Source of the DNA: Oopsacas minuta
Taxonomy: Eukaryota; Animalia; Porifera
NCBI GenBank assembly: GCA_024704765.1
Contig: JAKMXF010000011.1
Coordinates: forward strand, 603,557 to 667,556
DNA: 64,000 nucleotides
Direction: 5' to 3'
The notes beneath the pieces were generated by a model. That model worked only from the letters and a program-made list of their open reading frames with translations, had not been told where the DNA came from and did no database searches. Positions 37,437 through 64,000 of the stretch are shown piece by piece. The translations under genes and the position numbers were made by a program. Positions within the stretch are counted from its first letter, which is position 1. Each line of letters begins with the position of its first letter.

Positions 37437-40400
37437 ATGTCGCAATTATTCCGTAAAATCAAACGCGGTAAGAAGACTGCATACAAGTTTAGTATGAAGC
37501 TGACCTACCATGCGATAACACTCATACACGATCAAGAGTACACTCCATCCGGTCTGGTGATCCGATGGTCTCGAGGACACAGACAAGTCGTTTCCACGAA
37601 AGCCAACTGGACGCCTGGTTCACAACCTAACGCGAAAGGACAGCTAAATGGTGATGCGACATTCGAACCTCCCTGTACAGTAGAGTTATTAGTTACTCTG
37701 TATAAGGAAGCTAAGAGCGATCATTTTGATGAGAAAGATTATAAGTTTGTGTTAGAAGATGAGGGAGATGTAAGCGGGAGAAAAGCACTGGGAGTGTTCT
37801 CAATTAATATCGGGCAGTTTGCTGATATGTTAGGCTCGAATAATGAAATTACTATGGAAATGAAGCCACTTGTTAATAAGGTATAGTATCAGTTTATTCT
37901 TAAGTTTGTTATTTTCACTTTGTAATAACCCGGGCGAAATACCGGAGAACTCTGACCTTAGGAAATCTCTACTTAATACTTTGAATTTTGAAACATCTGT
38001 GAATGAAGGTATATAGAGTTTTCAAATTTATATATTGAAGATATGGGATATTTTGAACTTAATTCGCATTAAAGTGGACTTGCGTAGCAAGTCCTATTTT
38101 GCATGAATTTCTTGTTAAGGCTCAGCGTCAATTAAAAGTTAGACTAATTGCAACTAGCACATTTTCGTAGATATTTAATTGTTCATCATTTAGGTTAGCG
38201 AGGCTCTGGTAGCTGTAACAATTAAATCAGAATTCTTGAAGACAGGTAAGGTAGGAGATGATGACATGATGTCTACTTGGAGTGCTATGACTGATAGAGC
38301 TGATGCAGACATTGAAGATGATCAAGCGGATCTCTCACCTGACCTATCACCTGGTAATCAAGCTATGACTGCTTCTACAAGTTCAGGTATTGTCAATTTT
38401 TTTACAATGAGTAATTCTAGAAATTTTAAAACCAAAATTTCTAGAATTACTCATAGTAAAAAATTGTCTCCTAGGAGCCTCTCGTAACTTAAAGGAGAGT
38501 ATATCTTTCTTTGACTTAAAACCAGAAGAATCATTCTATGAGTTTATGATGCGTAATTCAAGAGATGACGTAATAGATAGTCAGGGCACTACAATGACGT
38601 TAGAACATATAAGAGATTGTAAAGTGATCGGATTATTCTTCGCAGCAAATTCATCTCCACAGTGTAAATTCTTTCTAACTGTATTAGACAGTTTCTATAA
38701 TTCTCTGAATGAAGTTAGACCGAGAGATTTCGAGCTTTTATTTGTGTCCTGTGATTACAATGATTCTGAGATGTTGGACTTTATGCAGGATTCAGGTAAT
38801 GTATATGTTCGAATAATTACGTAGACCACGAGTCTATAGCCTATATAGCCTACCCCTCCAAAATTTAAGGCGGATAAATAATTCGGGATCTGGTTCGGGT
38901 CATTTTGAGACACTCCTCTAGTTGATAGAGTGGGGATTACCAAGGATTACATGATTAGTTGAATGCCGTAGAACGATATGTCGTGGAACGAAATGTATGA
39001 TTCCCTGGCAGACATTATCAAGCTATTTAATCACTTGTGATTATGAACAAGTATTTTAATTTCGTATGGAATCAGCTATGGATTCCTTGCGCTGTACATT
39101 ACATTCTTGAGTAGCATGCAGGACAGATCAAATTTCCCTAAATATTCGGTCGACGAATTTTCTAAGCTAAACGTAATAAATTCGTTATGTATATCTACAC
39201 AGGTGTATCCTATCCTGGAGTAAAATCCAGTTCACAACTAGCTGAAGCTCTCAAAGAAAAGTTTGAGATTTCTACTATCCCAGAAGTAATAGCTATATCA
39301 GCTGCAGGAAAAACTGTTGATAAACAGGGTAGACTTAAGATAGAGAGATGTGGTGGTAATGAAGATTGTTTCGATATATTAGATCATTGGTTGGATGGCA
39401 AGCCAGCTCCTGTTAGAGCTGAATTAGAATTGAATGCTAAATCTTCTCAGTTGAGTGAGGATGGAGAACCTAAAGCTAAGATTGTGTCAAAAGAGGAGAA
39501 GAAGAGGCAAGAGAGGTTAGAGAAAGAGCGAAAGAAAAAGGAAGAGGAAGAAAAGAGAAGGTTTGTTATACAATATACGCGAAGTTATACATTCGGATAT
39601 ACCTGGAATTTCTGTCCCAGCCTGTGGCACTGGGTATCTTTAGAGTTTCCTTATTAACAACTTGGGTTTTGGATGTCAAACGAAGTTGCTAATAGGAGAA
39701 CATAATTAGTACAAAATCTATGCTAGGGAACTGAAAATGTTTTGCTAATTAATAAACAAATATTGCTATTTGCTAATAAGCAAACTCTACTATTCCATTG
39801 TAGCATTATGTATTTGTATGTTCGGGAATTCCAATAACTTCATATATGCTTTAAGAGCTAAAATCTTTTAGGAAGGAAAAACTTGAAAAAGAAGAGAAAA
39901 AACGTTTAGAACGAGACGAGAAAAAGAAAGTACGTGAAAAGGAGAAACAAGATAAGCGAGCTAAGAGATCTTCTGTCAGTATACAAAATGCAGTTAGTCC
40001 GAATATTCAAGAAGATATCACTACTGTATCAGACGACCCAGAAATAGGAATACCAGATCCTCCTCAAATAACTACATCAACTGAAGAGCTACTAGATAAC
40101 GAGCCTAAAACAAAGCCTACATTATTCCAATTAGCAGGTACTACACCTGAGAAAGTTGATACACAAGCTGCAGCTGATGATAAACCTGTGTCGGCTAAGA
40201 GAAAGGAAAAAGAAGAAAGTGCTTCATTTAAATCGACCGCTAAAGGATCTGATAATCAGCTGAGAGAAGCTAAGAGTAGGATTGTAGAGTTAGAGCAGAA
40301 TTCTAAGAATTTAACTGAGAATAATCAGGTGCTGTATTCAGCTAAATGTCAATTGGAGAATGAGAAAGATGATTTACAGGTAGGTTCTAGCTTTATTAGG

Positions 40401-43400
40401 AACCTATCTTGCTATAAACATGTACAGTGGAGTCTTCCAATAACGAACACATTGGGGATTAAATTTTGTCCTTTGTAGGTGAGATGTCCACTTCTCAGAG
40501 ATTGATTAAGTATTTTTTACATGTATTATTAACTTAATTCGTTCCACGAGCTTGTCCGTTGTAGAGGTGTTGCTCGCTTTTCGGAGTGTCCGTTTTGGCC
40601 TTATACTTAATTTGCATTACTGTATTACGTAGTACAAATCTTTAATTTACATCCGGTAACTCGAATCCTCAGGGGAAATCAAAATCTGTTCAAGATAGCA
40701 AATGTTCGAGTTACTGGATGTCGACTATATTCGATATAATAATTAATCAATTGGATCAATCTGGTTACGTCATAAATTTAATCTGTTTTATGACTACAGT
40801 GGAGTCTCCAGATATGCACAGCTATGGGAAACTTCTCAAAAGTTGTCAAAATACTTATTGATTATAATTTTACTGAGAATAAAATGTTCCATTTACACAT
40901 GTTTTTACCTTTTCGTATTTAAGCGACATTTCAAAATAAGCAGAGTTCGAGAGCATTTGTGTACTTTTCTGAAGGGTTTTGTGACCGTTGACATGTTTTT
41001 TAATTAGACAGGTGTTTCTATATTTCCGACTTCGATTTAACTAGAATCTACTTCATATCTTGTTTACATTTAATAGGAGAAAGTAATAGAGCTTACTCAC
41101 AATGTAGAAGACTTTACAGAGCAGGTACGAGACCTTACAGAAGCTAAAGACAATCTGAGTAGAGAGAACCATGAGAAAAATCAGCTGATTGATACTCTAC
41201 AAGATCAGAAGTTAGGTCTCACAGAGGATTTGAATGGTGCTAGAGGTGAACTGGAATCTATCAGGTAAATTTACACTAGGCTACTGTTAGTTGGAAACTT
41301 ATTTCAGCTCCACTACTGCCCGCATCAAATTTACCTACTGCATGAAGATTATCCTTATGGAATTAAAGGTTACATCCACTAACTCGAACCCTGAATGTTC
41401 GAGTTAACGGATGTGATAAGTACTAAAAGTACAACGAAGGGAAATGAAAATTCGTTCGAGTTACCAGATATTGACTGTATTTAGTTAGTCATGAAAGAAA
41501 ATTTCTACACAAGTCATATCTGCATAATTTTAATTCACAGGCATTTTAGCGAGAAAATATAATTGTTTGATTTAACCGAACTTTTGATGATGAGGTCATT
41601 TGATTAATACAAATATGATGAGGTCAAAATTTTCCGCACCTAATCTCTCTGCTATATGAACTACATTTGTAGTATGTACTGTATTTTAATTATGCAAATT
41701 CCCGCGAGGTATTTACCATACTTCTGTTACATGTCTTAGCTTTATACATCAGCTTTCTAAGTTTCAGCCAAGTTTATCATATTCTACTGTTTACATGGTT
41801 CAATGTTCAGATCTTGTTAGTAACCTATACATCACGCATATTGTATATTTACTTCTGAACAAATTTGGGCCTTGTTTTGGCCAACAATTTCTGAAAATTT
41901 AAATAATTCAACTCTTCCTCACGATATGTGCAAGGTATACAGTTCAATTTACTATTTGTATATGTAAGCTCTAAAATGTGTGTTGTGTCTAAATAAACAT
42001 ATTACCTACCTCTTTTTCCATATGTATTATTGCTCAGCATATTGAGATATAATTACTATCTTAGAATCTAAATGCAATATTTTCTAATAATACCCTTTCT
42101 TCCTATAATACTGAATTTATCTCCATATATGGGTAAAACTCGATAACTCGGTACCTCTTGGTGTGCTTGCATTGTTGCATTGTACTTGGAAAATTTTGGC
42201 CAATTTAATCTTATATTATATATGAGGTTATTAGAACGACGAAAAACTGCGTTTAGTTTACACGTAGCACGTTTACTCAATTTTTATCATAAATCTACAT
42301 ATGTACTTAACTTTCCACCACCTTGTGAATTCAAACTTACGTCAAATCTAATATAACCACTACAAACACAAATGGCTACATAACTCTTATTTATTTGAGT
42401 ATCTTATTACGTAAGATATTTTAGGAAAGAAAATTACATTATTTATCCTATTGTTTGGACAAATAATCTGCACATCTATCCTTAACTATAAGAATGCCCA
42501 ATTGAATAGAATGTGTTACGTTACAATCACTAAAAATCAACTCATGACCCAAATCTATTTTGGTACGGAAATACGTGCCTTGAATTAACAAGTGAAGGTC
42601 AGTTTGACGTACTCTTTCGAATATTGGATACAATCGGATTTCACCTGTGTATTATATAATTTCTATGTGACTATTAATAGTATGTCTCTGTTTCTGAGAC
42701 GATCATCGTCTTAATCGATTAGTATTCCCTCTTCTCTCTGCCTGGCCCATTCTACACTAATTTAATTCCAACACATATCATGGGTTCCTCACTTTATTTC
42801 ACCAATCACAACTAAGCCATTATTCCCATTATAATTCTAATTTGAAGCCATTTTTGAATAGAATATTCCTGTCAGTTCAATAGAATAGCAAATAGAGAGT
42901 ACATATAGAAGTGTGCAATTTAAACTAGCTGAATATACTTTCAGCTAACTTTAGATTAGTCAAGACAATTAACGTTGATACTATATTTAGCACAGCTACC
43001 CACCTTACGCAAGAAGAATTGATTTGATAGCTGGCCTATAAATACAAGAATTTGAATTGAATTACAATACCAAAATATATTTCCAAAATTTCGGTTTCAA
43101 ATTGAGATGTCTTTGCAGTTGGATATGTCCTCATTGAATTTGGGTTGTAATTCAGTTGATATTAAGAATTCTGACATAACTGAAAAATACGAGATAAAAT
43201 GGAATCAAGTATTGGGATCTGGCCTGAATGGAGATGTTTATCGATGCATCGATAAAACGACAAGTGAAGAATATGCCCTGAAGTTTTTGAGCAATTCTGA
43301 TTCAAGTCGTATGGAGATACACTTACACGGTGAATGCCAATCTTCTAAACACATTGTTGGGATCATAGATACATATTACTGCCAGTTAACAGCACCGATA

Positions 43401-46400
43401 ACAAAACAGATACCTGTTAAACATTATTTCTGTGTTGTCATGGAAATTATGAAAGGTGGCGATCTATATGACGTCATTTCGCGAAGAAGGAAACTGAATG
43501 AAGAGCAAGCGGCTCATTTCGCGAAACAGATTGCGATAGGCTTATGTGATATCCATGAAAGAGGAGTAGCACATCGTGACATAAAACCAGAGAACATTTT
43601 GTTTCAATCTCCTTTTCAAGAAGATGCCCAATTGAATACGATTAAAATAACAGATTTTGGGTTCGCAAAAGAACAGGAAAGAGGTCTTTCAAGCCCTGTA
43701 TACACTTTATACTATGTATCACCAGATCTTCTATTTGCAACTAACTCTGATTTGAAATGCAAAAATCTTTCGACCTATGATAAACGGTGTGATTTATGGT
43801 CACTTGGTGTTATCATATACATCATGGTAATGGGATATCCTCCTTTCTACCCCGAGCCAGGGTACAACCAGAGACTCACTTCGAATATGCGTGATTGTAT
43901 TTTGAATGGTAAAATAATGTTCCATAATCAATCGGAGTGGAAATCTATCTCTGATAATGCTCAAGATGTTATTAAGGGTTTGCTGACAGTTGATCCAGAT
44001 AGGAGAATGTCTTTGGATTCGTTATTAGCTCACCCTTGGTTTAATTAATATTATTTTATCATTTGCATTGAAAGAATATTATTGCATGTTGAGCACATGA
44101 AATACAATCGTAATTGATCTGATTTCCTAGGCTTTCACGACGAACATTATATGTTAATATTTAATTAATTAATTGAATAGTCTATTGTTGAGTTTTCTCA
44201 TTCGAATACTTGAATAATCTTGCTGACTACATCATTTAGTTAAGGTAAAAAGACGACGGTATTGTAGACAAAATTAATATATCATTAATGGCAATGACGT
44301 TGAGTATGTAGTCATTATATTTCCTTTCCTGAATACTTACGAATAGGCGAATATACAATACTTGGCTGGGTAAATATAAATACATAATATTATGTGGCCT
44401 TTTGCGGTTGATTTCTTAGAATCGATAATTCTTACTATCTTACTTTTTTCAATGTATATTTATTATACATTAATAATAGCTAAGTTGTTTAATCGTCTTT
44501 CTATGATGACGTATTATGTCTAATACGTATTATACGTTCAATATACAATTTTTGGTGACGTAACTTCTAGTGGGCTGATTTCTGCAATAAATATTTTGCA
44601 TCAAAATAGTAGTTCTCGAATTATTAATGAGAAATCTCGGCATAGTTAACCAAATTATATATACTTGATAATTATGTGACTTATACAAGTCTGACAGTGT
44701 CAAATCTCATATAACCTACATGTATAATACGTTAAAATTGATAACGTATGTATAACGTATTATACAACTTAGAATAATAATGAGTAATGTAGTTGATTTG
44801 CTTTTTCTCTATTAAATGAGATTTGTTCTTTTATTGTTTATTGTTCATTAATACCATCAATTCATTCATGAATACTTTAAAATAAGTACTGAGATCAATA
44901 CTGTGGCACAGTAAAAAGCTTTGTAAACATTTCGATCATTTTATATAACTCCATATTGATAATTTGTTGTCATTGTTCCTACTTATCTATCATATAATTA
45001 ATTTTGAATGTTGTACAATATATATTTCCTCCTATAAACTGGCTAGATATCAAACTGAGTATTTTGCCAAAAAACGGTTAGTCAGTTACGATGATTCTTG
45101 ATCAGAGACTGTTTTTGATAACGTCCATTCTCCTATAATCATCTATTTTCTATTAGAATTTCTGAGCGAAATTAAAGAAAACCCCCTTCTGAGTAATAAT
45201 AGTACTTTGTATAACATTTATTTGAATTTTGCTAATTCGTCGTTTTAATTGTCTTGTGCAATATTTTTCACTAATCACTTGACAGATTGTGTAATGTATA
45301 CTGATTAGAAGAAGGACACTCTTACAAAGAATATAGTTATCACTTTGTATAATCTTCACATTAGGTAATATTATCTACGCATGAACGAGGATGCATTTAT
45401 GGATCGTAAATAATACATTATTATTTTGATTGTTGTGTACACCTATTCTGTTTATACTATTGATAAAATTGATTGCATAATTAGCCAATTTGAATTACTA
45501 TATGAATTTTGCTATTTTTATCAAGTTACACTGCCTTTAATTAGCCATTTTTTTGATTAATTAATATTTTCCAGGCAGCAATTCACAAAAGCGAAACTTA
45601 AACTGATAGAATATGAATCTGATAAACAAGCTAAAGATGAGGAACGTCAACAGCTGTTAGCTACAACAGAACTACAGGGATGGTTATACAAGAGAGGAGT
45701 GAGAGGGGTGACTGGCAAGAAGTGGAGACGGAGATACTTCCATATGGGACAGGGTTTTAAACTGTATTACTATAAAACCTCTTCAATGCAGTTACCTCAA
45801 GGATATATTGATCTAGAGAAGGTCAGTTGATTTGTATATAGGTTTGTGAATAAATAACAGTCCACTGATAATTTTTGTAACAGTTTTTGTTTTACCTGCT
45901 AGATATGAGGATCTGTGAGAATCTCACGGTGCGTATTGTGGGTACTGTACCTCATTAACGAGTGTCGATACTTTTATGTTTATAGGTGCCGTCGGCTCCA
46001 ATTTATCGGACGGCTGGTACACTGAAATTTTGCTATGAACAGATTCTTGTCTTACCTCAAAGTTCCTATTAATCTTAAAACATTATCTTTGATTAATCAT
46101 GGTCAGCTGTTTAAATGTGTACAAATGTCTTATTTGCTATTCCTCTCATATTTAGGTAAAGAAGGTAGAGCCTCAATCTCCAGATAAACAGGATAAAAAT
46201 AATGCTTCTTTCACCATAGAAGTAGAAGGTCGGGTATTTGAATTGTTATCTGTTGACGTTAGTATGAGAGACCAGTGGATAAATGCTGTTAACTTCTTAG
46301 TAGAATACCGTAGTAGGTATAAAGTTGATATTCGTACTCTATCTGACACAAGAACTAGTTCTACTGGGGATAAGGCCGTTACCTCATCGGACGCTGATGA

Positions 46401-46425
46401 AAATCGAGTTCCTGGAAAGTCTTAA
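37437..46425 (+). CDS. 8-exon protein (~842 aa): EHBP1-type NT-C2, nucleoredoxin-like thioredoxin fold, coiled coil, PH domain
   Basis: Exons 37437-37880, 38194-38386, 38475-38795, 39203-39560, 39872-40379, 41077-41264, 45575-45821, 46156-46425. All junctions are GT-AG with matching phases, total 2529 nt with no internal stop. NT-C2: YKF..TYH..W.RG..TLYK..F.EKDYKFV. Trx: VIGLFFAANSSPQC..FELLFVSCD..STIPEVI. PH: LQGWLYKRG..KKWRRRYF..GYIDL..DQWINAV. Confidence 0.75.
43107..44048 (+). CDS. MAPKAPK5: MAPKAPK5 (MK5/PRAK)-like Ser/Thr kinase, intronless, ends right after the kinase domain, nested in an intron
   Basis: YEIKWNQVLGSG, ALK, HRDIKPEN, DFGFAK, YTLYYVSP, CDLWSLGVIIYIM..GYPPFY, HPWFN*. Closest in pattern to MK5 (YNINWTQKLG..DFGFAK..YYVAP..HPWLN). 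Confidence 0.85.
   Translation: MSLQLDMSSLNLGCNSVDIKNSDITEKYEIKWNQVLGSGLNGDVYRCIDKTTSEEYALKFLSNSDSSRMEIHLHGECQSSKHIVGIIDTYYCQLTAPITKQIPVKHYFCVVMEIMKGGDLYDVISRRRKLNEEQAAHFAKQIAIGLCDIHERGVAHRDIKPENILFQSPFQEDAQLNTIKITDFGFAKEQERGLSSPVYTLYYVSPDLLFATNSDLKCKNLSTYDKRCDLWSLGVIIYIMVMGYPPFYPEPGYNQRLTSNMRDCILNGKIMFHNQSEWKSISDNAQDVIKGLLTVDPDRRMSLDSLLAHPWFN
44527..44765. repeat. Dispersed ~245-bp repeat, copy 2
   Basis: Homologous to 5720-5965. Confidence 0.65.
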
Positions 46426-48118
46426 GTTGTGAAAATTTTGATTGTACATATTTTGTAATTATTTAGACCTAGAAGTATTCAAAATATATTTGTTTCAATA
46501 ATTACTTTAGGTTTGGCATTCCTTTGATCTGTATATATGTATTTTTGATGAACTATTTATTTCAACTCTATTGATATTAATTTTACCATTCATTTTTACA
46601 GTCGTATAAAACATGGAATATTAATATCCACAAAAATCGATTATATATATCGCGTTATTTATTTTTACATATAACTTTTGGCTATTTTGGCGTTTTTACT
46701 AAACTGCCATGTTCATTGACATAGCTTCCCGTAGCCTTTGGTTGCCCTTTGGCACGCGGCTAAACTTATTACGGAATATTATACTTGTACAGTTGTACTT
46801 ACCGATCCTCCTGGTATCCCTAGATGATACCAAGATTTCACCAATTATCCAGAGGAAATTCCTGGGATGTTTTTCCATATTTTGCTATATTTGTGGATAT
46901 TTACGAGTGGAATAGGTGCAATATCGTGAAACCTCGGGAAATTTGTAAAAGCAGTTGGTAAGTATGTCTTCGTACTATATTTCTGGGCATCTGGATAAAC
47001 GATTATTCGAGGTAGAAGCATACTTGTTTATCAATATTTAATTGCTAAGTATATTAACGTCATTCAAATGTTAAGAGGTAAGACACAGTCTTAATTCTCT
47101 TACTTTTTATGATTAGCTTAGGTTAAAACACATCACCTGCTTCCTCTATTTTATCTATTCAAATTACGTTAGCAAATTTTACCGCAATTATAATGGGTTA
47201 ACAACGAAGCATGATTATGTGTGTCTAGTGACTGTTGTGTAATTTGCATAGTATAGCTGTTTGTCAGAAATATTAATCCTCCTCCTATACTTTATGATAC
47301 TTACCAACCCTTTGAAACCATTTCCTTGGCTATATTTCTCGAATTTTCTGGATTTTCAAAAGATTCAACAGATTTATAAATTTCTATGCAAAACTATGAA
47401 TTGTTCACTCTTTTATAAGAAAAAATTCAGAAATATCCAATATTTTCCCTGGATGGTTGGTAAGTATGCATTATCCATTAATATCAGCATGACGTCATGA
47501 CATCCTGTTTATGACCATAATGATAATTTTCTATATTTAGTATTAGAGACTATACTAAAATGATTTTAAGTATGTCGGGGAGATTTGCTTTCCAAATTAT
47601 GGAATATTATTTTCCTGACTGATAATATTGTGAATAAATACTTTGCCAAAGTTAATTGTTTTGGCGAGAGTCTTTGGGAGGACAATGACCTACATACACT
47701 GGTACATATGACTCTCATTGTCTTAAACTTTCCCTAATCAATACTGCTATTTGCTTTAGGACATGCTGTATATTTTAGTTTACCTAAAATACAGCATGTC
47801 TATTTAAATAATCTTTGTTAAACAGACATAATAAGATAGATAATTAGATTATGAAATAATTTTCGGTTATTAACAATGAATAGAATTTATCCTACGGTTT
47901 TTGCTAATTAATACAAACAGATTACAATTCAGGTAGGTGTACTATTCTAAAATCTAAACCCAAGAGTAAGAGGAATCATCCATATAGGACAAGGATCAAA
48001 TTTGAAATTTTTCGGTGAATTGTGACTGTGTGGATTATGTGAATATGAATTATCATAGAATAAAGTTCGGAGGATTTTCACAACTATTTGTATTTGTAAT
48101 TAGGCTAAATACCACTAA

Positions 48119-51100
48119 ATGGAAGGTAACTATGGAAAGCTAGAATTATCCTGGCAATCAGGTCCCTTACCAACTCACAACACACAGCTAAGCTATCTGA
48201 CAGATGAATCTATCTTATACAATGCTGGAATCAATTTAAACCTTCTGGACGTATCTACAGGTACTACCAACCAGTTTGGTATAAGTACCCGCACTGTATC
48301 CTGTATAGCCGTGTACAGGTGTAATCAGTGGGTAGCACAAGCACAGCTTTCTGTAGACTCAGATGTAATTCTGTTAAATGAACGAGGTGACGTCAAAGGG
48401 AAGTTTGAAACTGGAGCTAGACTTGAGTATTCTGCATTAGCATTCTCTCATGATGGAAAGTATGACATTACATAAATATGTGATAATAATGTTGCAATAG
48501 GCAATTCGATTGAAGCTATGTGATTTAATTGATGGAATACTTCAATAAAATTTATTACGCCAAATAGTACAGTGGTGTTCACCTATTAGCAATATTTGGC
48601 AATTTTTTTTTCAGGGACTTAGGGTCCATTTTGTATTGGAAATAATTCTTCTGATAGCAAGTAGGAAGGGAAATTCTTACGAAATACGAATTGCTAATGG
48701 GCCAACTCCAATGTAGTTTCATTGCACCTAATTTTGGTAACAAGAATATTTAACCGAAAATACTTGGTTTCAAATCATAATTTAGTGCAGAATGTTGCAA
48801 ATCTGATATTTATAATTTGTATTGACAAGTTTTACCATGTTGCTTGGTCGAAATTTTATTCAATCAATTCTAATATTACGTATTTTCTGAAGTTTTGCAG
48901 AAAGCATAATTCGTCAAATGTTTATGGTCGAAGAGAATATTCGCCGAACAGAAATTATTAGACCAAAAACCTTTGACGAAACTTCCGGTTCCACGAATTC
49001 TAATACGAACTTTCTCTGATAGATACATCGCTGGAGCATCAGGAGTACCAGAATTCAAACTATACATATGGGATATTAGTAATTACAAGCTAGTATGTAG
49101 TACGGAGATAGGACCTGATAAGAGAGTTAAAGAAATAGAATTTGATCCTCAAAATAATTCTAGATTATCAGCAATTACAGATGAGGGAGATTTCTTTCTT
49201 TATAAAATTGAAAAGTGTGGTTCTCTCTTATCAGAACTTTCTAGAATTGAGATAGGTGAGAATCGTGTTCTGTTAGTGTATACCAATATATGTAGATATT
49301 GATTAGTATATCCAGTCAACCTGCAACATCCGTCGAAGTCTCTCATTCGACCAAAATTATTTCTGTTGAAAGCCCTTCCCATACCGAATCTGTTCGCTAT
49401 TTCGGTGATTAGTTTTTGTCTCCAGAGATCGAATTTATGGATTTTGACCCTATTTGTGTTTCTGCAACATCCGAACAGAGCATCATCAAACAGATTGTTA
49501 TGCTAAATCATGGCTCAAGATGTGAAAATTCATATTATTCAGCATACAGGAGTTTATAATATTAGTCGAACAAATGACAAGCTCATGATTTCGAACAGAT
49601 GACGTGCCAATTCGAACAAATACAGCGGCCCCACAAATACATGTCCATTCTTAATAATTGACGTACTAGACACAAACTCTGTAGTATCTATCGCTAAATT
49701 TGTATGTACATTAAAACATAAATAACTAAGCACTAATATTAACTGAATAATATATGATATTATTTCTGTATTACAATTCTAGAACTACCTGATAAAGACT
49801 GTCGTATCGGGTATGAGAAGGACCCTATAACCAGTCAGCTGTCTAGACCTGATGTAGATGCTACTCTACACAATCCTTTGTTATCAGATTTAGAGTTCTA
49901 TCCTTATAAAGTAGATCCTTCTCTATTAGAATCTGCTGGGAAGAGTAATGTTATTGCACAAGGATGGGGATTGAATAGTCAGGTAATGTACACGAATACG
50001 TATTGTTGTTTTGTTATTAAGTTTATAGGTTATTTGTGTAATATTCACTTTGTTAATTTTACATTTTTAACAGCTATACCTCCTGACTACAGAAGCAATA
50101 TTCTCAATAGACGGAGATAAAGGTAAACTAACTATACTCTATCGTCTATCAGAACCATCCTATATACCTCCACATACAGCTCAATCTCACAGAGACTCAC
50201 AACGTGTAGCATTCCCAGAAAAAGAAGATGACCTCATTGAACAAACTGATATGATTAGTGTATCAGATAGATTACTAACCAATCCATTGTGTATGGCTAT
50301 AACTAGTCAAGGATTTGTACTGGGTTATGATGATGGTATGATAAGGATATTAGATGATAAGAATCAATTTGTAGTTAAGGGAGAAATTAATTTAGATGGC
50401 ATACCTGTGTGTTTTATATTTCCTCCCAGTTTCACCAGTTTAACAGTTGTAACAGATTCTGGTGGATTATACTCACTTGATATATTGCCGCAGAGAGAAC
50501 CTGTAGCACACAAGCTTAATACTGTTAATAGGTAATTCATTGAATTGTATAAATTAGATATTTGATATATGATCACTAACATCGTATTCTCCTCTAGACA
50601 ACCATCGCTTAGTAATATATCTACAGTAGCGTTATCACAAGATAGAGAAGTTGTTATTACAGCTAATGCAGATGGAGTGATATTAGCATGGGAGGGAATA
50701 GATGGACAGTTAATCTCTAGTATTGTTACGGAAGATGGATGTACTACATTTGTAGGTCTTAAATCTGCTCCTGTAGTAGTTACAGGTAGTCCTCCTTATA
50801 CTGGGTTACTATTAGAATATGACTTTTGTCTGAAATTAGAGATTTTACGAATTTCAAACTTTTACAAGTTATGTATATACATATATGGTCCTATGCTTTC
50901 AATGTAAGATAAGTTCATTGGTTATATCGATTTCTCCTTTTTGTCTAAGTAATTATAGCGGTCCCTTGAGCTTCGATGTAACTGGAGTTGACTGTGTGTC
51001 GAGAACCTGTAATATAAACGATCGATCAAAATCACATACAAGTAAGAGGACAAAAGTATTCGACCACTTACCGTGATTTATACTAAGTATATCAAACTAA

Positions 51101-54100
51101 ATCCGATTATTCTGGCGTATAAAATATTTATTAGTTATAAGGCAGAGAATAAACGTGAACCAGATTCATTTATGTAGATTGACGGATATCGATGTACAAG
51201 GATATCTTAGTTACATGGACGAATAAGAATATAACAAAATATTTGTAACTCTGAAATGGTCGAATTCTTTTGTCCATTAACTGTTTATTGTACATAACTA
51301 TTATATATTCCAATCACTAGGTACCTCATCTGGGTATGTGTGTGTATTCGACCTTACAGAGCCTGTAAAACCTAAACTAATACAAACTAAACGATTACAT
51401 AAAGATTGTATAACAGAGTTATCAACAGATATATACTCACAAGTAATTATATCATGCAGTAGTGATTGTAATATGTTCATAATGGATGCGAGAGTAAGTT
51501 CAGATCTCAATATACTCTGTAGTCTATCTCTACACTATACGGTTAGTTGGTTTTTGCATTATTTGGGTTTTCGTGATGTAATTAGCGTATAGAATTCCCT
51601 AATTGTTGTTTCTCATAAGATTATTATATTGTTAGACCATGGATACGAGCATAGTGTGGAGCCCATATGCATGATTACTAGCTGGAAGAAGTGACGAAGT
51701 TTCTGATACATACTCATTTTAATTATTATTGTATTTCCTGACACATGCACTGTATATTATGCGATTAAATGTTGATATAATCCCGAATTCTACAAATTCC
51801 GTACAATTGAATTAGCATTCAAATGAGGGATTATTTGTGAGATTTTTCGCATAATAGTTTTGAATATTTATGCAAAACGTTCAGTATAGGCATTCCTGAT
51901 TTGATTCTAAAATCTAAACGTTCTACATATACGTATCTGTTCTTTTTTGTGTGATTGTTTGATTTATGACGAAGTGTTTTATGCTACATGGTTAATCTTT
52001 TTGGCACAGTTTGGATTGAACTTGTTTCAGCTCCACCATCCAATCTTATACAGAATATCACTCTATTTTTCTATGTTCTTGGACTTAAATTATGTTGTTT
52101 GTATTCAATCAGTCGATCACTTTGGAAGTCTATTATGCCGGCTTATTTCCAATTGCACAATACATCTATAGAAAGCAATTGAATCATTAATTTAATACTA
52201 TCCACCATTTTCTGTTCTCTGTAATTATACAAAACATGTTTCTTACACAGATTGAATACTTATACAAAATTAATATTATGTTAGTTGCTTGTACTGGCTA
52301 AGTTTATTCTCTAAGGTTCTAGCATGGCTGCTCTTTGCTCTTTGCTCTTTGCTTTTTGTTGAGGTTAAGGATTAATACAGGATAAAACCTAATTATGGAT
52401 ATGGTAGATATATCAAGTTATATTGCAATATGTACAACAGTTATCTTATAACTACTGCAAGGTATAGCATACTTGTTTAGATAGCTATTGGGAAATTTGT
52501 AATCGTATTATATTCCAAAGGTAGTAATTTCTGAACGAAATATACGAATAGACAGTAGATACTCGTTAATACGATATTTGGTGACGTGAATCATGAGATT
52601 GCTGGGATATCTGTGTATAGGTCAAATGAATCCGATGATAAATTGTTTTCACTGACTCTCTGTAGATGTGGTGGACAGCATTTGATTCTCACTATCTCAT
52701 TATTTAAGCCTAGGATAGCCAAGATCACAATAAATGATTCTTAAATATCATAATGTGTGGAATATATGTGAGAACGTCTGAATGAAATTGATAATACTGA
52801 TGAAGTCATTTCATATCTTGCTACTCAATTACGCTGATTGATGACAAAATTGTAGCAATATTACCAATTAGCTTTGTGCTATAATAAGTTTAAAATGCCA
52901 TTCCTTATTGGAACATTTCCATTTTCCAATACTATTGTCTCATTTTACATATACTTAGTTGGCTAAATAGACATATGACATTTGAGTACCAACATATGAT
53001 CACGGTATTGAATTATTATACCCAATTATTTATATATTATTCAATGGCACAATATAATCAGGAGCCAAGTAAACTATTCATACATTCCTGGTGGGCATCA
53101 GGTTGCTACGGTAAACCAGGGCTAATTGGATATATATATATAAATACACAGAGTCAGTGTATTATAAGATACGTTGCTGTTAGAATTAGTTTGAGAAACA
53201 TGAGTAATTCATCTAGCAAACGATCTAAAGTTTTGACACGTTTAGAAACGGTTGAAGAAGTCGGGAGTGTCATGTCAGATTTGCCGAATAGCAACACATA
53301 CAATCTTGATAATGATCAGCTGATGCGAGATAGCATCAATATTAGTTTACAAAAAGATATCCGTAAACGTAAACTCAATCCTCTTTCAGTTGAAGAAACA
53401 GATACTACAAATGTTTCTACTCAAGCATGGAGAGAAAAGCTCCAGAAATCTCTACGTAGTCTTCGTTTCCACGCGCTTGTAACTGTACTTGTGTTGCTTG
53501 ATGTGTTCCTTGTTTTGGTTGATCTTATCTTAAATGGAGACATTATTCATGGCGAATGTTTAAAAGACGACGATTGTTCTGTGAGTCAATGCTCGAAAGA
53601 CTTAATTGAAAATTGTCCCTGTCCAATTAACATCACGATTTCACCAAGCAATTCAAGTAATTCGATTTGTAGGTTAGTTGGGTTTAAACGTGAGTGTGTA
53701 AGTATTGAAGATACTTCAGTACCTGTTATACTTATTCTAAATGGTATTTCACTGTTTATTTTATTTATTTTCATTCTTGAAATCGTGTTGAAGTTAGTCG
53801 CATTTCGATTGAGGTTTTTCAAAAAGTTTTTCGAGGTTTTTGACGCGGTTATTGTCATAACATCATTTATTATGGAGTTTGTGAAGTATGTGTTTTCACT
53901 GGAGCAACATTTATCACATTCTAACAATAATGCTGATTCTATAGAAAAACTACAGTTCTTTGATTTATTAATTGCATTTCGTCTCTGGCGTGTTGTACGT
54001 ATAATTACTGGAGCATTAGCAAGCTATAACACAGCCAAAACACAACGACATAAGACAGAAGTCCACAAAATTGTGCTGACAGAGAACAAACGCTATACTG

Positions 54101-57100
54101 AACTGTTTAATGAGTATGAATACGCGAGCGATGAGATATTACGTCTTAGAAAATTATTAATCAATATGAAAGCGAATCCATTTCCTGCTGGATATCAATT
54201 GACATTATTTGAGGTACAAGATCTAGGAATTGAGTCAAGTAATTATGATTTAGTCGAGAGGAGGAGCTCTTTATACAATGAGACTACTATTTAATTTGTC
54301 CCTTGCATAATTATATTATCGTTTTGTATCACATTTTTGGTGTATAAGTCTTTCTTAAAATATGCTCATGTCCAAGTTATTAACTCCTATCGTGAAATTT
54401 TAAAGTTTCTAATGACGGGCAGCATTTGACTGCCTGCCAACATTGAATAGATATACCATTCAAATGCAAATATATTATATATTTCCCGATTTATCGCCTA
54501 TTCCAATAATGGCTTACTATGCTATCGCATTACATATCCCATAATAATTTGGATAAGTTATTAATTAGTAAGCTGCAACGAATAGAAAACCTTCAATTAT
54601 AGCATGCCTGCTACAATGCCATTATTTCACGTTTCATCAAATCTACACAGTACACATATACATGTAATCCTCGTTTTATCTACCGTAATGATTCTCATTT
54701 CGTTAGTAGTTACATAATTTATCATGGGTGAGTCGAAATTCATACTCCGTATCCAAGCTAATCCCTTACCCGGTTAAACAGCATTTGTTGAAAATCATTG
54801 GATGTTTTAAAACTGATAACTTCCTATGTGCTACAGCGTAAAGAATCAGAACCCTAACGTTCTGTACCAATTTCCCACAGAAATTTCGAATTTTGGATAT
54901 TAAAAAATCCTAAAAATTTGCGACGATGCCAGTATTGAGTTTACTATGTTAGGGAGAGAATTCATTGATAGGTTTTAACAGTACAATATAGCCCCATTCC
55001 GGATATAAGAACATTACGTTTACATATATGCTATTCCTGATGATACTCTTATAACCGGCATCTACTGTACTGTACTAAAATGTCTTTTTATGTGACTACA
55101 TTTAGGTATCTTGTGTCTCAGTATACACACCTAGCCATAAAGAAACTCTACATATTGCATCGTTAGGAAATGATAATGACGTCATAACATTCCAATTCAA
55201 CCCAATTTGGGCTGAAGAAGCAGACTTAAGTTACTACAGCGACCCGAGCACTAAACAATTGAACCGTGATAAGTGTAACTATCTTGTTAGTAAAATTACA
55301 ACTGTCCTATCTGGTTTGTGTATCACTGGGCCTAGTTTGTTATACAGTGTGAGTAGAGTTAGTGGGGAGTTGTTACGGCTTGTATTGAGTGAGGTAAAAG
55401 GTGAAGAGGGAGAAGTGCGTAAAACCTTTCAGATAGAAGGCCGTTACCCTGGACATATTATAACAGGAGCTCGATTAGATTCGATTGATAACAGTTGTAC
55501 TTGTGTAAGTCCCACACACGAATTGGTAGCCTCAGTATATAGAGATGGACGTGTTAAGTTACGTAGAGTATTAGAACCGGCTGCTGTATGCTTAGAATTC
55601 AATGTAGTACATTATTCACGTGATAATATACTAGCTGTTGTGTTTTCAGATACTGCACAGAGTTTGTATTGTCTATCTAAATGTGGAGGTGGAGTATCTT
55701 GTGTTAAGCTAGATGGGAGTGGTAGTATGATAGGAAGACAGAGAACACAGGCTGCTAATGTTAATAAGAAGATGAGAGATAATTTATTGAGGACTACAAG
55801 AGAAAATGAAGGTAGTTATCTGCAAGCTCAGCATGGCATTGGAGAAATCTCTTACAAAAATGATTCAGGTGAGTTTTTACTCACAGTGGTGTTCGCCAGT
55901 TATAGCAAGTTCGCGTATTAAAAAGGAAATTCTTGCAATATATGACTTGCTAATAGGCGAACTTCACTGTAGTTAATATTGTTTCTACTATATAACGATT
56001 AACTGTTCTAATTGTTGCTCTTATACAATTTGACAATAAGTGTACTATTAAGCTTTCACCTCTCAGTTGAAACCACAAATACACTAATTAAGAGAACTGT
56101 AATAATTTAATAATTCTAACCAAGGAATTGCTTCGGACATCTCTGGCGCCATTCTATGCCAAGTTCATGGACCTTATACAATTTTATTATATTTTCATAT
56201 GAAGTATGATTTCACGCTACTCTGTTAAATGAACTTCTGGAGACCTTTTGTAATTTGTATCGTCAACAATGTTTCAAGATGACTGAGTTTACTAGGGAAC
56301 AGCAAAACAGAATTTTTACTTTTGTGTACTTACAGTCTGGTTTTACACATTTTATTTTGAGATTTTAACGTTCATTAAAATGCCATGTTTTATGCCAAAT
56401 TCATCCAAGTTCATGCCAAAAGTCGGTTGTCCAAACTATATTGTCAAACTACGTTTTTCCTCGAATAATGTATATTTGGTATTAATATTATGACAAAGTA
56501 TAGCATTTATGAATTGTATAACTCCAGAAAAACTTGTAATAATCGTCAGAATTATTTATCATTAATTACATTGTTTTAACAGGTTTGAAAGCTAAGTATA
56601 TAACAATAAAAGAATTGGGACTTAATACTGAATCAGATACCTGGCTAGATGTATGCAATCGTGATAGCGAAGAGAAAGAGAAAGTAATATATACGCTACA
56701 ACGAGAAGAACTTGTGAATGGATTGAATGGATTGAGAGAGACTGTATTACAAATGATTGAGGATAATCAAATTCTTCCTGAAATAGAACAATTGAGTAGA
56801 ACAGATTTTGTATTAGATATTGATAAACAGAGAGAATTGAAACAGAAACAGGAAGATTCTATAAAAGCTAAAGAGAGAGAAATTCACTTGCAGAATTTAG
56901 CTAAACTATTTCTCACAGAACAGCTGAAGGATACCTGTTGGGAAACTATGACGGTAAGTGTATACGGTAAACACTAGTTTTAGGAACAAAATCAGACCAG
57001 GGGGGTCTAGCATGAGAAATTGAACTCACTTTACGGTGGTTTATTCTAAAGTTATTGTTTTCATGTGAACTCTACAATCTGCTTATTTATCCCTGTGTGT

Positions 57101-60100
57101 AGGATGGGTTTGGGCTGTGTAGAAGAGAACGTAGTATTTATGGAAGCAAATTTTTGTCTCGAATTGTCTCCATACAGTAGTGAACTCTCATTCCCGATAT
57201 GACGTCAAAATTTTCAGTCTGTTACGGCCTTCTCAAGAATGAGAACATTTGGTTATTTTCAATACCGGATGAGAAATATAAATTTCTACTATCCCTTTGT
57301 ATCCGTATCAACGAAGCTAAATATCTAATATCTAATAGCAATCAGAATCTTGTATTTTGTAATATTATCAACAATTTGGACAACACGATAGAGGTATAAG
57401 GTATCCTGTACTAAATTAGGTTACTGGTAAGAACGTGTACTCATTCAATAGAAAGGTAGAAGTATCAAATTATCCGCTTAGTAAGCTGATTGAGAAAGAA
57501 CGAAAGGCTAGACAAGCTGCGATAGAGAGAATAGAAATAGTGAAGGAGTGTATTGATGCTAGAGAAGATCTAGATGGTGATATTGGACCGGGTATTTATA
57601 AGACTCAGGTATGTTGATAACTTGATATATACCGCAGATATATTATATGTATTTTCGCAAAGAAATCATTATCTTATTTGTGCGACAATAACTATAGGGG
57701 TCCGAATTAACGGCCCCCGCTTATTATTTTTTATATTTTAGATATCTCGTATTGGACAGAAGACCGAGGATGAAGATGATGTAGATGATAAAGGAGCTAT
57801 GGGAGGTAATAAAGAAGAGGACATTGATAGAGAATCTATTGAGGGTAGGAAAGCTGAGACACACGGAGGAATAGTTATACCTTCACAGTTTAATACAAGA
57901 AGTATATTGTCCTGCAGAGATTTAGTATTGATTCTACATCAGTCTGTATTTAAGGTAGGTCTGGGTGAAAATTTTGTCAGATTTCTTGAATTTTTGTGTA
58001 GTAATAATAAAAATTATGGCACATGTCACATATCCAATACTGCAATAATAAACAATTTCCTAAGTTGTATTGAGTACTTGTAAGTTATTGTGTTTATTCT
58101 CATCTACGTAATTATTGTTATTTTAACGTTAATTATTTATTATACAATATTTAGTTTTATTATATTAATAATTAACAAATTTAACTTTTCCTAGAAGAAA
58201 AATCTGTAAACACACAAATGTATGGGAAATCTATTTATCTTAAAATGGTGTGTCTAGGTGAAGCAGTTCTTCAATCAAGAGTTCGATGAAGTTCTAAAAT
58301 TGAAACAATCTGAAGTAATGCGAACGAATGAGCGTTGTTTTCGTATCAGACAGATTCTGCAAGATCTCAAAACGAAACACAAAATTGAATTTTATACTAA
58401 GAGTGAGACACTAGCAATGCATGCTTTCGAAGAGCCTGGAAGATTACTAGAAGTAAGAGTTACTTAAATTTGTAACTATTGGATATATTACTTGTTTCTC
58501 ATCAATGATTTTCGACGAAACTCTGGGGTTTTTTATTGTATGGATATTCAGTAGACAGTAATTTGTAGGTACAAATTAGTAGTCCATTAGTTAGATGATA
58601 ATACATCAAATTCTTGAGATATTCCAGAAATAATTGGGACGGTGCGCGTCGCAGGGCGGAAATGATAAACAAATATATTCCCACGAATATTGATTTGGGG
58701 TATAATAAGCACTTTTTCGGCTGTATGATTTGTTTAAATGTAAATTAGAACTTTATTGCTATAATCCCACACAAGATTTGTATTTGTAGAGATAATATAG
58801 CTTGCTTATAATATGGAATTCTAACTAAATAGAAATTGAAATAACTGTATCTAATTTCCTTATAAAATTGCCTCAAACTGTATTAATAATGCTTTTCAAC
58901 AAAGGTTATAGACTCAGAAGTTAAAATAGACAAATACGAGACTGTTACAGAGCGTCAGCAGAGAACTCAGCTAGCTCATATTGAAGAAGAGAGGAGATTA
59001 GCTGAGATGGGAGACAAATGGAGAGAGAGAGGATTAGATATGATGATGGGAGGTAAGCTAGAGATTGATACAGAAGATGAGTTGTTCAGGGTGAGTACTG
59101 AGTAGCAGAGATTGAACCGGTCTCCTTTAACTGTTAAAACGCGCTACAATTTCTAAATTGAGATTTAAACTAACACTATATCAATGTATAGCAATAGTTG
59201 CCAACCTGAGTGAAGAAAATAGCGAGATTTCGCGTAAAATCAAGCCAATTGGCAAGTTTGTATCCCAAACAATTGGTCAATTTCAAACTGCCGGTTCACC
59301 GTTGACCGGTCTGTCAAAATATCGACCGGTTCCATCTCTGCTAGGTAGGCTTTACTCAAGGGGCACTATCACTGTGTCTAACCGATCTAATATTTCTCCT
59401 TAAAATAAATGTAACAAATTTAGACTTTACAGCAGTATTCTATACTATATAGGATCTGGTAGAACCCGAGTTCCTTGATAACCCAGCATTATCTGCAGAC
59501 CCTGAGCTACAAGCTAGGAAGCAAGAATGGCAGCTACATGTAGAACAAGTAAAAGAAGAGAGAGACAAACATAAACGAGCATTAGAAGCTGAAATGTCTA
59601 AATTAGAGCAAGCTATGGTTGACGGGTGTCAAAGGGTAGATGACAAGATTCAACAGCTTTATCGTGCTAAAATATCAGCTGATAAAGTAGTGTATCAGGA
59701 AGAGCTTAAGATTATTACTCTGCTAGCTGCGGAAATGTTCACTCAGGTAAAGTGTAAAATTTAACGATTTATGTGCATATTTGTGATTCTTGGAATATTT
59801 ATAGGAACTTTTGAAACAGGAAGAGTTCCTGTTAAAGATGCTGGAGCAGAGTAGAGAGTATAAATTAGTTGCTAATGAGAGAGTCAATGAAATTAAAGAG
59901 GATTTGGATAATTTCACAGAGATGTATGCTTCTAGTCAGATAGATGATAAGAATTTAGATAGGTAGTATCACTAATCAATAATAATAGTAGTTATCTAGT
60001 AAATCTCTCTATGGAGATTGTAATTGAATCAATAATTCAAGCTAGAAAATCAGTTAAAATATATTTCACTCATTTTACTACAGTAGACCCTCGCTGATCC

Positions 60101-62076: not shown

Positions 62077-62082
62077 CTATTA

Positions 62083-62106
62083 TATTATTATTATTATTAT
62101 TATTAT
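62083..62106. repeat. (ATT)n microsatellite in the CFAP43 3' region
   Basis: Direct reading just after the TAA stop. Confidence 0.9.
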
Positions 62107-63055
62107 ACAGATGATTATACTTATTTATCATATATTAAATGACGTAATCAGTTACATTATACTCTCATTTACAGAAATATTTTAGGGATAATTATCATAG
62201 AAATTATCGGAGTGTACGCTACGTTAGTCTTCCTCAATGTGCGGAGGCTGTATACAAAAGATTGTTAACAAATCCTCGAATCTACAGATTTTATGAACAT
62301 TGGAGCTAATTATAGCATACACTTTGGGCTGTTATGCTGTTGTGGTATTGTAATTGCGTGGGCAGATATCCCTATATATCTCACAATTAATAAATTAGCA
62401 GCTCAGCGTCGAAATACCTACTCCTCGATGATACAATACAGTTTGAACCTAAGTACGTAATAGTCATTGAGAAATGTTTCAAACTACCATCGAATATTTA
62501 TGAGAGTCTATAGGCGTGGCGGAAACAAAATGAAAGTTGTACAAATACCATACATTTAATGCAGATTCCAGAAAAAGTGGAACGGAACTTGCCTGACCGG
62601 TTTCACCAGCCCTGGCCTACCTCAAATATAATGGAACGAAGTGTCAGTTTATTGGATACCGACATTTCGTTCCAAAAATATATTGAATCAGGTCCTAGAG
62701 GCATTCATTGAGTTTGGGGAGTGAGAACTGACCGTGGATAAGTGATGGGACGAAATAGTAAAAACTACATCAAAATTAAGAGAATAGTTCCAGTAAAGGA
62801 ATGTTAATAGAACATTGTTACACACATCAATGAACCAATAATAAATACACACAATCTTGATGAACAATCAAACAAACTCTGAAATGAGAGAGAACTCACT
62901 ATTAAAATAATCAATAGCAGGCTTAATAACCTACCAACCTACAAACATAGAGTCTACTCGAAATATATATTAAACAACCTAGCAAGTTAAAAGCACTGTA
63001 CAATCCTGGAGTAGAGGGTACAAACAACTTTTTTCTCTTCTAATTTACTTTCATT

Positions 63056-64000
63056 CTAGGATACTTGGTCCATATTTGCTTCTAGGAGTAGAATTCCTGA
63101 TTCCTTTCTTGGAGGCATTCGTTCATTTCCTTTATCTAAGTCTTTCGCTTGATCGAATGATTTTATTTCACAGATTCCTTTCACCTCTAATTTGTGTATA
63201 GCTGTAGAAGATAATGTATAGTGAAACTCAAATAAGACATATCACCTCGAGAAACGGTTAATTCCACTTAATCGTGCAAAATGACCTGCCCTAAGCCCTG
63301 AAGTTACCCTACTGAGCAGACTCTATTGTATTTAAATATTAAAAACAACTGTATTTGGTGGCTATCACTGACAACTATCCAATATCCACTATTATTATAT
63401 TGTATTAATAAAACTCGAATAACCTGATGCTAATCCCTCTTTCCCTTGTTGTAGAATTCCATAAGGTAATTCACCAGCTGGTGTAAGTCCCTTCAGTCTA
63501 ACTACATTCTCACTCTCCTCTCTGTAGAATAAAACGAAAGTAAATTACATGTCTTTCTAAGGTATATCCTGATTAAGTTTTAACCATGGATGGAAGATTT
63601 ACTGTATCTTCTTGGGTTTTGTTCTAGGTCATTTTGAAGTACTCCTCGCTTGGTTGGAGCGAGGATTTCTATAGAACATAAATCCACCATCCATGGTTAC
63701 ATAGGTAATAAGCATATCTGGAGACCATTTTTATCAAAGCACAATACCTGAGAACACTGAAAACTCGTTGTATCTTCCCTATAGCTCTTATCTTGCTCTT
63801 TATTACTTCTTTTCTATCAGGCACGTCAGGTGGAATTTCCTCATCTAATTATCGTTATAATTACGCATAATACTATACAGGTATTGGAAATTTTGTACTT
63901 TGACTTACCAGTACTATCGTCACTACCGTCATCATCCTCTGGACATATCTTTAGGATATTGAGTAACATTTCTGTAACTTTCTCTCCAACGAATGGAAGA
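63056..64000 (-). CDS. PPP3C: Calcineurin A catalytic subunit, last four exons (5' part outside the window)
   Basis: Exons >64000-63909, 63844-63748, 63521-63424, 63201-63056 give [16 protein letters not shown] (CnB-binding), [23 protein letters not shown] (calmodulin-binding), [14 protein letters not shown] and [21 protein letters not shown] (autoinhibitory). Confidence 0.95.

Follow-up and report, generated by a model that had tools for sequence, protein, structure and literature searches.

A glass-sponge gene encoding an NT-C2 domain, a degenerate thioredoxin fold, a coiled coil and a PH domain in one protein

A locus of the glass sponge Oopsacas minuta (Hexactinellida) raises the question of whether an NT-C2 domain, a thioredoxin-like domain with an altered active site, a coiled coil and a PH domain are parts of one protein, and, if so, what such a protein might do. 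The window, meaning the whole stretch of DNA analyzed, comprises 64,000 nucleotides (nt) of contig JAKMXF010000011.1 (positions 603,557–667,556, forward strand) from the O. minuta genome (GCA_024704765.1, JAKMXF accession series; PMC10280926); all coordinates below are positions within this window unless another sequence is named. An earlier note, made from the letters alone, had joined eight exons between 37437 and 46425 into a single architecture of this kind. Our analysis leads to the same structure: the locus, LOD99_13408, is one gene for one protein comprising an NT-C2 domain, a degenerate nucleoredoxin/tryparedoxin-type thioredoxin fold, a coiled coil and a PH domain. As to its role, we lean, with little better than even confidence, towards an 842-residue dimeric peripheral-membrane adaptor or tether whose thioredoxin fold would be non-catalytic and would bind a partner.

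Gene model and splicing

The gene model comprises eight exons on the plus strand. The start codon and the bulk of the EHBP1-type NT-C2 domain lie in exon 1 (37437–37880, residues 1–148), and exon 2 (38194–38386, residues 149–212) supplies the final strands of that domain, an acidic tail (DDDMMSTWS) and the onset of a disordered linker that extends over residues 182–223. Exons 3 (38475–38795, residues 213–320) and 4 (39203–39560, residues 320–439) encode the N- and C-terminal halves of the thioredoxin fold, respectively. The former contains the stretch FFAANSSPQC (38636–38665, with S-S-P-Q-C at 38651–38665); the latter contains the cis-Pro codon (39280–39282), carries the fold to about residue 390 (39414) and begins a K/E/R-rich helix at residue 416 (39490). 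Exon 5 (39872–40379, residues 439–608) encodes the remainder of this putative ER/K-type helix (to residue 471, 39968), a disordered S/T/P/E-rich segment (residues 472–557) and the onset of the coiled coil (residue 558, 40227), which continues throughout exon 6 (41077–41264, residues 609–671). Beyond intron 6 (41265–45574), exon 7 (45575–45821, residues 671–753) completes the coiled coil (residue 702, 45668) and encodes the first half of the PH domain (from residue 705, 45675) with the motif KRG...KKWRRRYF, and exon 8 (46156–46425, residues 754–842 and the stop codon) encodes the second half (to residue 808, 46320) and a disordered tail.

All seven introns follow the GT–AG rule and measure, in order, 313, 88, 407, 311, 697, 4310 and 334 nt; the exons total 2529 nt, equivalent to 842 residues, with no internal stop. 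The joined model is identical, letter for letter, to a public O. minuta protein (P0169, LOD99_13408, labeled "hypothetical protein"), and the public annotation of GCA_024704765.1 gives the same gene span, with an 842-residue product bearing NT-C2, Thioredoxin_8 and PH and with a kinase annotated as a separate nested gene. The in-frame union of eight exons over seven junctions drawn up in the earlier note therefore stands, including the exact junctions 38386/38475 and 41264/45575 and the 4310-nt phase-2 GT–AG intron.

Splicing was examined by comparing public sequencing runs over positions 40426–46425 (6000 letters), and four runs (X1–X4) contain the stretch. X1–X3 show flat, DNA-like depth over it. 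In X4 the depth reaches thousands on exon 6, the kinase open reading frame (ORF), exon 7 and exon 8, is about 54 in introns and falls to 0 in intron 7; because its depth follows the exons, we read X4 as RNA. Loose ends in this run carry letters of the adjoining exon: at 41075 (exon 6 acceptor) the last 16 letters of exon 5, at 41265 (exon 6 donor) the first 15 letters of exon 7, at 45572 (exon 7 acceptor) the last 11 letters of exon 6, and at 45823 (exon 7 donor) the first 12 letters of exon 8. X4 contigs additionally contain an explicit joint from 45820 to 46156. X4 thus shows exons 5 and 6, exons 6 and 7 (over the 4.3-kb intron) and exons 7 and 8 spliced together, and at 41264/45575, a junction singled out in the earlier note, exon 6 is joined to exon 7 from both sides. 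A further source is a Trinity de novo transcript of Vazella pourtalesii, the 834-residue ORF of which (P0155, EukProt) is colinear with all eight exons at 64–83% identity and has alignment breaks at exon ends, that between exons 1 and 2 falling exactly at 37883/38194. In a Vazella-like assembly (L007), exons 1–5 are conserved as separate ORF pieces, and intron lengths differ.

The presence of a complete same-strand kinase ORF inside intron 6 made it worth testing whether the model is an annotation chimera, in which two or three adjacent genes (NT-C2/thioredoxin, kinase and PH) have been wrongly merged. The length of this intron, 4.3 kb against 88–697 nt for the others, and the production of the public annotation by Braker/Augustus speak for such a merger, but the letters of the exon 6/exon 7 junction are present from both sides in X4, exon 7 lacks an in-frame ATG ahead of the PH domain, and the kinase ORF begins with an ATG and ends with a stop of its own. 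A single Vazella transcript ORF covers all parts, and intronless paralogs show an identical domain order in one ORF: the approximately 630-residue proteins P0004 and P0178 (the latter being O. minuta LOD99_1214) carry NT-C2, Thioredoxin_8 and PH in one unbroken ORF of 1893–1896 nt. Contradicted by the public annotation, the X4 junctions, the Vazella ORF and the intronless paralogs, a chimera is very improbable, and we reject it.

In exon 8 the assembly departs from the read sets at two points: X4 reads TGA, not TAA, at the stop codon (46423–46425), and X2–X4 have A in place of G at 46389. Both look allelic.

Modules of the protein and the altered active site

The NT-C2 domain, reportedly defined by Zhang and Aravind in 2010, is recognized by Pfam in exon 1 alone (PF10358; E 7.5e-14, 52 bits against a cutoff of 25.2), where it matches residues 12–141 at the extreme N-terminus. 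The module as a whole takes in residues 11–180. An AlphaFold 2 (AF2) model, built from a 16-sequence alignment and having a mean predicted local distance difference test score (pLDDT) of 70, folds residues 13–180 as an all-beta sandwich (pLDDT 80–92), for which Foldseek returns C2 domains (E-Syt C2B, cPLA2 C2 and a Trichomonas C2) at template-modeling (TM) scores of 0.61–0.66. Alignment to the N-termini of EHBP1 and EHBP1L1 gives approximately 30% identity and 17 invariant columns, the acidic tail motif among them. Within it, RKIKRGKK (residues 6–13) and WSRGHR (residues 44–49) align to the EHBP1 basic patches, with W44, R46 and R49 invariant. Previous work on C. elegans EHBP-1 has shown that the corresponding elements, RRLRR before strand 1 and HRRRK in strand 2, are required for binding to endosomal membranes rich in phosphatidylinositol 4,5-bisphosphate (PI(4,5)P2) (PMC4894640). 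The acidic sequence following the domain, DDDM-x-S-T-W-S-x-[LIVM], was also considered as an LC3-interaction-type motif; this candidate was rejected because EHBP1 proteins share the same conserved tail, which is family-specific.

The sponge protein thus resembles EHBP1, EHBP1L1 and C. elegans EHBP-1 in its N-terminal NT-C2 domain, the basic cluster before strand 1, the W-x-R-x-x-R patch in strand 2 and the acidic D-x-D-M-x-S tail. It also resembles EHBP1 in having a helical region between its N- and C-terminal modules, and EHBP1 proteins are the next best matches to exon 1 after the sponge family itself. It differs in lacking both the actin-binding CH domain and the Rab8/10-binding bMERB domain, a thioredoxin fold and a PH domain being present in their places. 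Pfam finds no CH or bMERB match in any exon or family member, whereas true EHBP1 matches show both, and because both are absent, the sponge protein is not an EHBP1 ortholog. An EHBP1-type NT-C2 anchor appears here to be reused with different effectors, namely thioredoxin and PH instead of CH and bMERB.

Turning to the middle of the protein, Thioredoxin_8 (PF13905) is recognized in exon 3 alone (E 7.5e-10, 39.5 bits against a cutoff of 27). The AF2 model places a thioredoxin fold at residues 224–390 (pLDDT 80–91), and Foldseek matches it to tryparedoxins and to the 16-kDa thioredoxin 4fyu at TM 0.72–0.80. Sequence alignment to 4fyu (E 4e-15, residues 22–129 of 145) runs without gaps over exons 3 and 4, and 2lus aligns as well. 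FFAANSSPQC aligns column for column with FSAHWCPPC of 2lus and 4fyu, and TIP (Pro at 39280–39282) aligns with their cis-Pro GIP. The WCPPC dithiol is therefore gone, with both the first Cys and the Trp replaced, and the second Cys (Cys276) and the cis-Pro remain. This bears out the reading of ANSSPQC in place of AHWCPPC, and with it that of a redox module without the nucleophilic Cys, SSPQC lying under WCPPC. Ratios of nonsynonymous to synonymous substitution rates (dN/dS) against the L007 ortholog are 0.055 for exon 3, 0.15 for exon 4 and 0.047 for the NT-C2 exon 1, all of them rough since dS is saturated; as far as sequence comparison tells, the degenerate thioredoxin domain is under purifying selection and is not decaying.

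The domain shares with nucleoredoxin, tryparedoxin and 16-kDa thioredoxin (4fyu, 2lus and 1o73) a full-length alignment, the cis-Pro and the TM scores given above, but differs from them in having SSPQC for WCPPC and in being set in a multidomain membrane protein rather than occurring free or as tandem thioredoxin repeats. Use of a nucleoredoxin-type fold for binding or structure is known from the Toxoplasma microtubule protein TrxL1 (PDB 7miz), which both the sequence and the fold searches returned, and RdCVF/NXNL1 is a nucleoredoxin-like, non-catalytic thioredoxin-fold protein. Neither has NT-C2 or PH, and the likeness need not reflect orthology at the sequence level.

Between the folded modules, the AF2 model predicts disorder at residues 182–223, a helix at 416–471, disorder at 472–557, a single helix at 558–702 and a disordered C-terminal tail. 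Residues 558–702 show a 3.5-residue hydrophobic periodicity above that of all 2000 shuffles, and because this heptad periodicity is unmatched among the shuffles we assign them as a coiled coil of approximately 145 residues, roughly 21 nm in length. Residues 416–471 are of a different kind: this 56-residue segment is 84% K/E/R and 7% hydrophobic, and a heptad signal is absent. We read it as a probable ER/K-type single helix, distinct from the coiled coil proper and inserted only in the long paralog described below. The coiled coil of the earlier description is thus borne out at residues 558–702, whereas the separate ER/K-type helix at 416–471 was absent from that description.

The PH domain is recognized in exon 7 alone (E 1.4e-5, 26 bits against a cutoff of 25.1), and the full domains of relatives score 52–67 bits. 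In the AF2 model the PH fold occupies residues 705–808 (pLDDT 85–91), and Foldseek matches it to inositol-phosphate-bound PH domains, those of PLEKHA7, ARAP3, TAPP1 and DAPP1, at TM of about 0.8. Taken over sequence and fold, the best matches are lipid-binding PH domains (cytohesins/GRP1, PEPP1, TAPP1, DAPP1, ARAP3 and PLEKHA7). The basic signature of phosphoinositide-binding PH domains is K-Xn-(K/R)-X-R in strands 1–2; the corresponding stretch here reads YKRGVRGVTGKKWRRRYF, in which K710, R722 and R724 are invariant in 16 of 16 family members. Compared with the PH domains of GRP1/cytohesin, TAPP1, DAPP1, PLEKHA4/7, ARAP3 and SBF1, the sponge domain has the same K-x-G...(K/R)-x-R-x-F signature and a TM of about 0.8, but only 20–27% identity, and its Q765–D766 pair, invariant in the sponge family, is a feature that we could not connect with them. 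Its sequence places the domain in the phosphoinositide-binding type; lipid specificity is not readable from it. The sequence features thus support the earlier placing of lipid-binding-type modules at both ends of a helical rod, NT-C2 at the N-terminus and PH at the C-terminus, with patches and signatures kept.

A sponge family and its possible roles

Exon 1 was searched exhaustively with HMMER against 1.84 billion cluster representatives, which yielded 313 matches. Fragments of the same gene from other glass sponges rank first, followed by three matches at E 1e-22 to 4e-19 and then by the mass of EHBP1/EHBP1L1 proteins (E 2e-15 and weaker). Among the best 150 of the 313 matches, exactly five clusters share the thioredoxin and/or PH regions of the Oopsacas protein. 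Pfam finds NT-C2, Thioredoxin_8 and PH together in P0004, P0005, P0006 and P0032, while ordinary matches carry NT-C2, CH and bMERB. The three domains are colinear in P0155, P0004, P0005, P0006, P0032 and P0172–P0178, and P0057 keeps NT-C2, the coiled coil and PH and has no thioredoxin domain. P0032 is KAL5482183.1 of the demosponge Ephydatia muelleri, with CPPC kept; P0005, P0006 and P0057 come from sequencing runs or metagenome samples, and GC contents of 0.35, 0.45 and 0.43 give no more than a hint of their origin. A literature search found no mention of SRR2064712, ERR11417832, ERZ20067936 or JGI 3300047097. The Oopsacas protein is therefore not a one-off and belongs to a small family, the members of which have so far come from sponges of at least two classes plus the runs and metagenome samples.

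Glass sponges have two paralogs, of which LOD99_13408 is the long, intron-bearing one. The short paralog is represented by P0004 and P0172–P0178 in glass-sponge assemblies, in synteny with the O. minuta copy, with a SAM-domain gene upstream and an ATRX-like gene downstream. In O. minuta it is LOD99_1214 (L008:10001–11893, JAKMXF010000144.1), an intronless gene for 630 residues located between SAM-domain genes and an ATRX-like helicase gene; P0004 has the same neighbors in another glass sponge (L002). In Ephydatia, in contrast, the homolog is encoded by at least 14 exons over 9.2 kb, so that the intronless short copy may be a retrocopy. None of the Ephydatia exon ends, located approximately by tblastn, clearly coincides with an Oopsacas intron. 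The Ephydatia protein (L009, CM110746.1) also contains, in the linker between NT-C2 and thioredoxin (residues ~215–345), a 12-residue tandem unit resembling KEEVGVRSGPMV in approximately nine copies.

Active-site motifs vary across the family: NSSPQC or NSASQC in the long paralog, NWSD(P/T/S)C in the short paralog and P0005, WCPPC in the P0006 group and RCPPC in Ephydatia. With (W/R)CPPC kept in Ephydatia and a related environmental group, the degenerate site is, on this sequence comparison, the derived state. A maximum-likelihood tree places the SxxC proteins in one clade (90/89) and the CPPC proteins in another (98/97). The simplest history is an apparently single loss of the first Cys that preceded the duplication in glass sponges; since the branches of the tree are long and its root is a midpoint only, we infer this rather than read it directly from the tree. 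The family provides a natural series on what becomes of a nucleoredoxin-type fold after loss of its chemistry, from CPPC (demosponge-type) through SxxC (the two glass-sponge paralogs) to deletion of the domain (one member).

A literature search turned up no paper in which "NT-C2" and "thioredoxin" occur together. In the ESM Atlas, a search by features was without a match and no cluster of at least 50 members has the architecture; a structure search there yielded EHBP1L1 and nucleoredoxin clusters alone, at TM below 0.3 by query. Word-index protein searches offer no basis for absence outside sponges: that with the Vazella protein gave at least three matches, its K/E-rich stretch dominating the candidates, that with the family alignment returned only the short-paralog group and missed even some query members, and that with the PH region of P0006 returned only P0006 itself. 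Public labels are "hypothetical protein" at NCBI and, assigned automatically, "protein-disulfide reductase" at UniRef, the latter being misleading for the glass-sponge proteins. The statement in the earlier note that no protein with this combination is known accordingly holds for the literature searched, but not for databases, where the family is present as unnamed or automatically named entries (LOD99_13408, LOD99_1214, KAL5482183.1, the Vazella transcript, other glass-sponge assemblies and environmental or RNA contigs). Each module is well known, and the combination, present in at least two sponge classes, is undescribed in that literature; we regard this as a modest advance and not as a field-changing surprise.

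The adaptor or tether towards which we lean would be built, from the N-terminus, of NT-C2, a disordered linker, the thioredoxin fold, the ER/K-type helix, a disordered stretch, the coiled coil and the C-terminal PH domain. The coiled coil would hold two chains in a parallel dimer. NT-C2 may bind acidic lipids via the two basic patches that EHBP-1 uses, and the PH domain may bind a phosphoinositide; together, these activities would allow the protein either to read two lipid signals on one membrane or to bridge two membranes some 20–30 nm apart, a tether between two membranes being only one of these two options. In glass sponges the thioredoxin fold would no longer reduce disulfides and would serve as a conserved partner-binding module; in demosponges, with CPPC intact, the same position may still be redox-active.

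Several points weigh against this account of the gene and its product. Read evidence covers exons 5–8, junctions 1–4 resting on the Vazella ORF and on the unbroken thioredoxin domain over exons 3 and 4, and X4 carries no RNA label on record, its RNA nature being deduced from the depth pattern. Long disordered linkers mean that neither NT-C2 nor the thioredoxin fold sits rigidly at the end of the rod, the function of every family member is derived from domains alone, and Cys276 is present in every member having the domain, which leaves room for a thiol-based role.

That last point is the core of the main competing explanation, which we consider unlikely, in which the protein is a monothiol redox sensor or switch acting via Cys276 (for example by S-glutathionylation or a mixed disulfide with a partner) and making membrane attachment or partner binding depend on redox state. 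Cys276 and the cis-Pro have been kept by both glass-sponge paralogs long after loss of the first Cys, in a domain that appears to be under purifying selection, and because demosponge-type members keep the full CPPC, the ancestral protein was probably redox-active. Yet thioredoxin-fold reductases use the N-terminal Cys as their exposed nucleophile, with the second Cys acting as the buried resolving residue, and SxxC forms are normally inactive; moreover, the Trp preceding the motif is also gone in the long paralog, and P0057 has dropped the whole thioredoxin domain while keeping NT-C2, the coiled coil and PH. Another possibility, to which we likewise give little credence, is a single-membrane coincidence detector or scaffold like EHBP1, the thioredoxin fold recruiting a partner to endosomal or plasma membranes rich in PI(4,5)P2 or other phosphoinositides. 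The NT-C2 domain is of the EHBP1 type down to its acidic tail motif, EHBP1 itself acts as a single-membrane adaptor (PMC4894640; PMC7442826), and the flexible linkers, 42 and 86 residues long, would allow the two lipid modules to contact one bilayer. A rigid helix of approximately 145 residues and a 56-residue single helix between the lipid-binding ends are, however, typical of spacers and tethers, though the observations made here suit one membrane as well as two.

More speculatively, and with considerable doubt, the family may be a sponge-restricted fusion of an EHBP1-type anchor, a nucleoredoxin-type redox module and a PH domain, which in demosponges, with their intact CPPC, would make a redox-gated membrane tether or trafficking adaptor. 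In glass sponges it would have turned into a pseudo-enzyme first and only then have duplicated, yielding one compact copy without introns and one long copy bearing an added ER/K spacer, with rod length, not chemistry, tuned in the latter by these syncytial animals.

The nested kinase gene and neighboring DNA

Intron 6 hosts an expressed MAPKAPK2/3-like kinase gene (43107–44048, plus strand, 313 residues), intronless, on the same strand as LOD99_13408 and separate from it, which the earlier note did not mention. Pfam identifies Pkinase in the ORF at E 3.8e-60, and the best PDB matches are MAPKAPK3 and MAPKAPK2 (E ~1e-53). The protein stops right after the kinase domain, without the C-terminal regulatory and docking tail of MAPKAPK, and the depth over its ORF is very high in the RNA-like X4. 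The locus is thus a verified same-strand nested gene in a glass-sponge intron. Nested genes are reported to be common in glass sponges: Aphrocallistes has 2432, and the O. minuta annotation lists 83 (PMC10282587). In the Vazella-like assembly, intron 4 of the orthologous gene (L007:13650–19500) is approximately 5.9 kb long and contains two ORFs of 508 residues belonging to Aa_trans (amino-acid transporter), on the opposite strand; the nested genes of the two sponges therefore sit in different introns (4 and 6) of the same gene.

Within introns 5 and 6, X1–X3 show depth spikes of 10- to 40-fold at 40426–40700, 41226–41460 and 44426–44700, and contigs jump between 40674 and 41393. These spikes point to short high-copy repeats with a GTTCGAGTTAC-like core flanking exon 6, although a repeat search in introns 5 and 6 found nothing of note. 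Farther downstream, at approximately 48100–64000 (L001:15013–20942), one annotated product of 2097 residues has both WD40/CFAP43 and Ion_trans Pfam matches, and a nested channel gene may have been fused into a CFAP43 model there.

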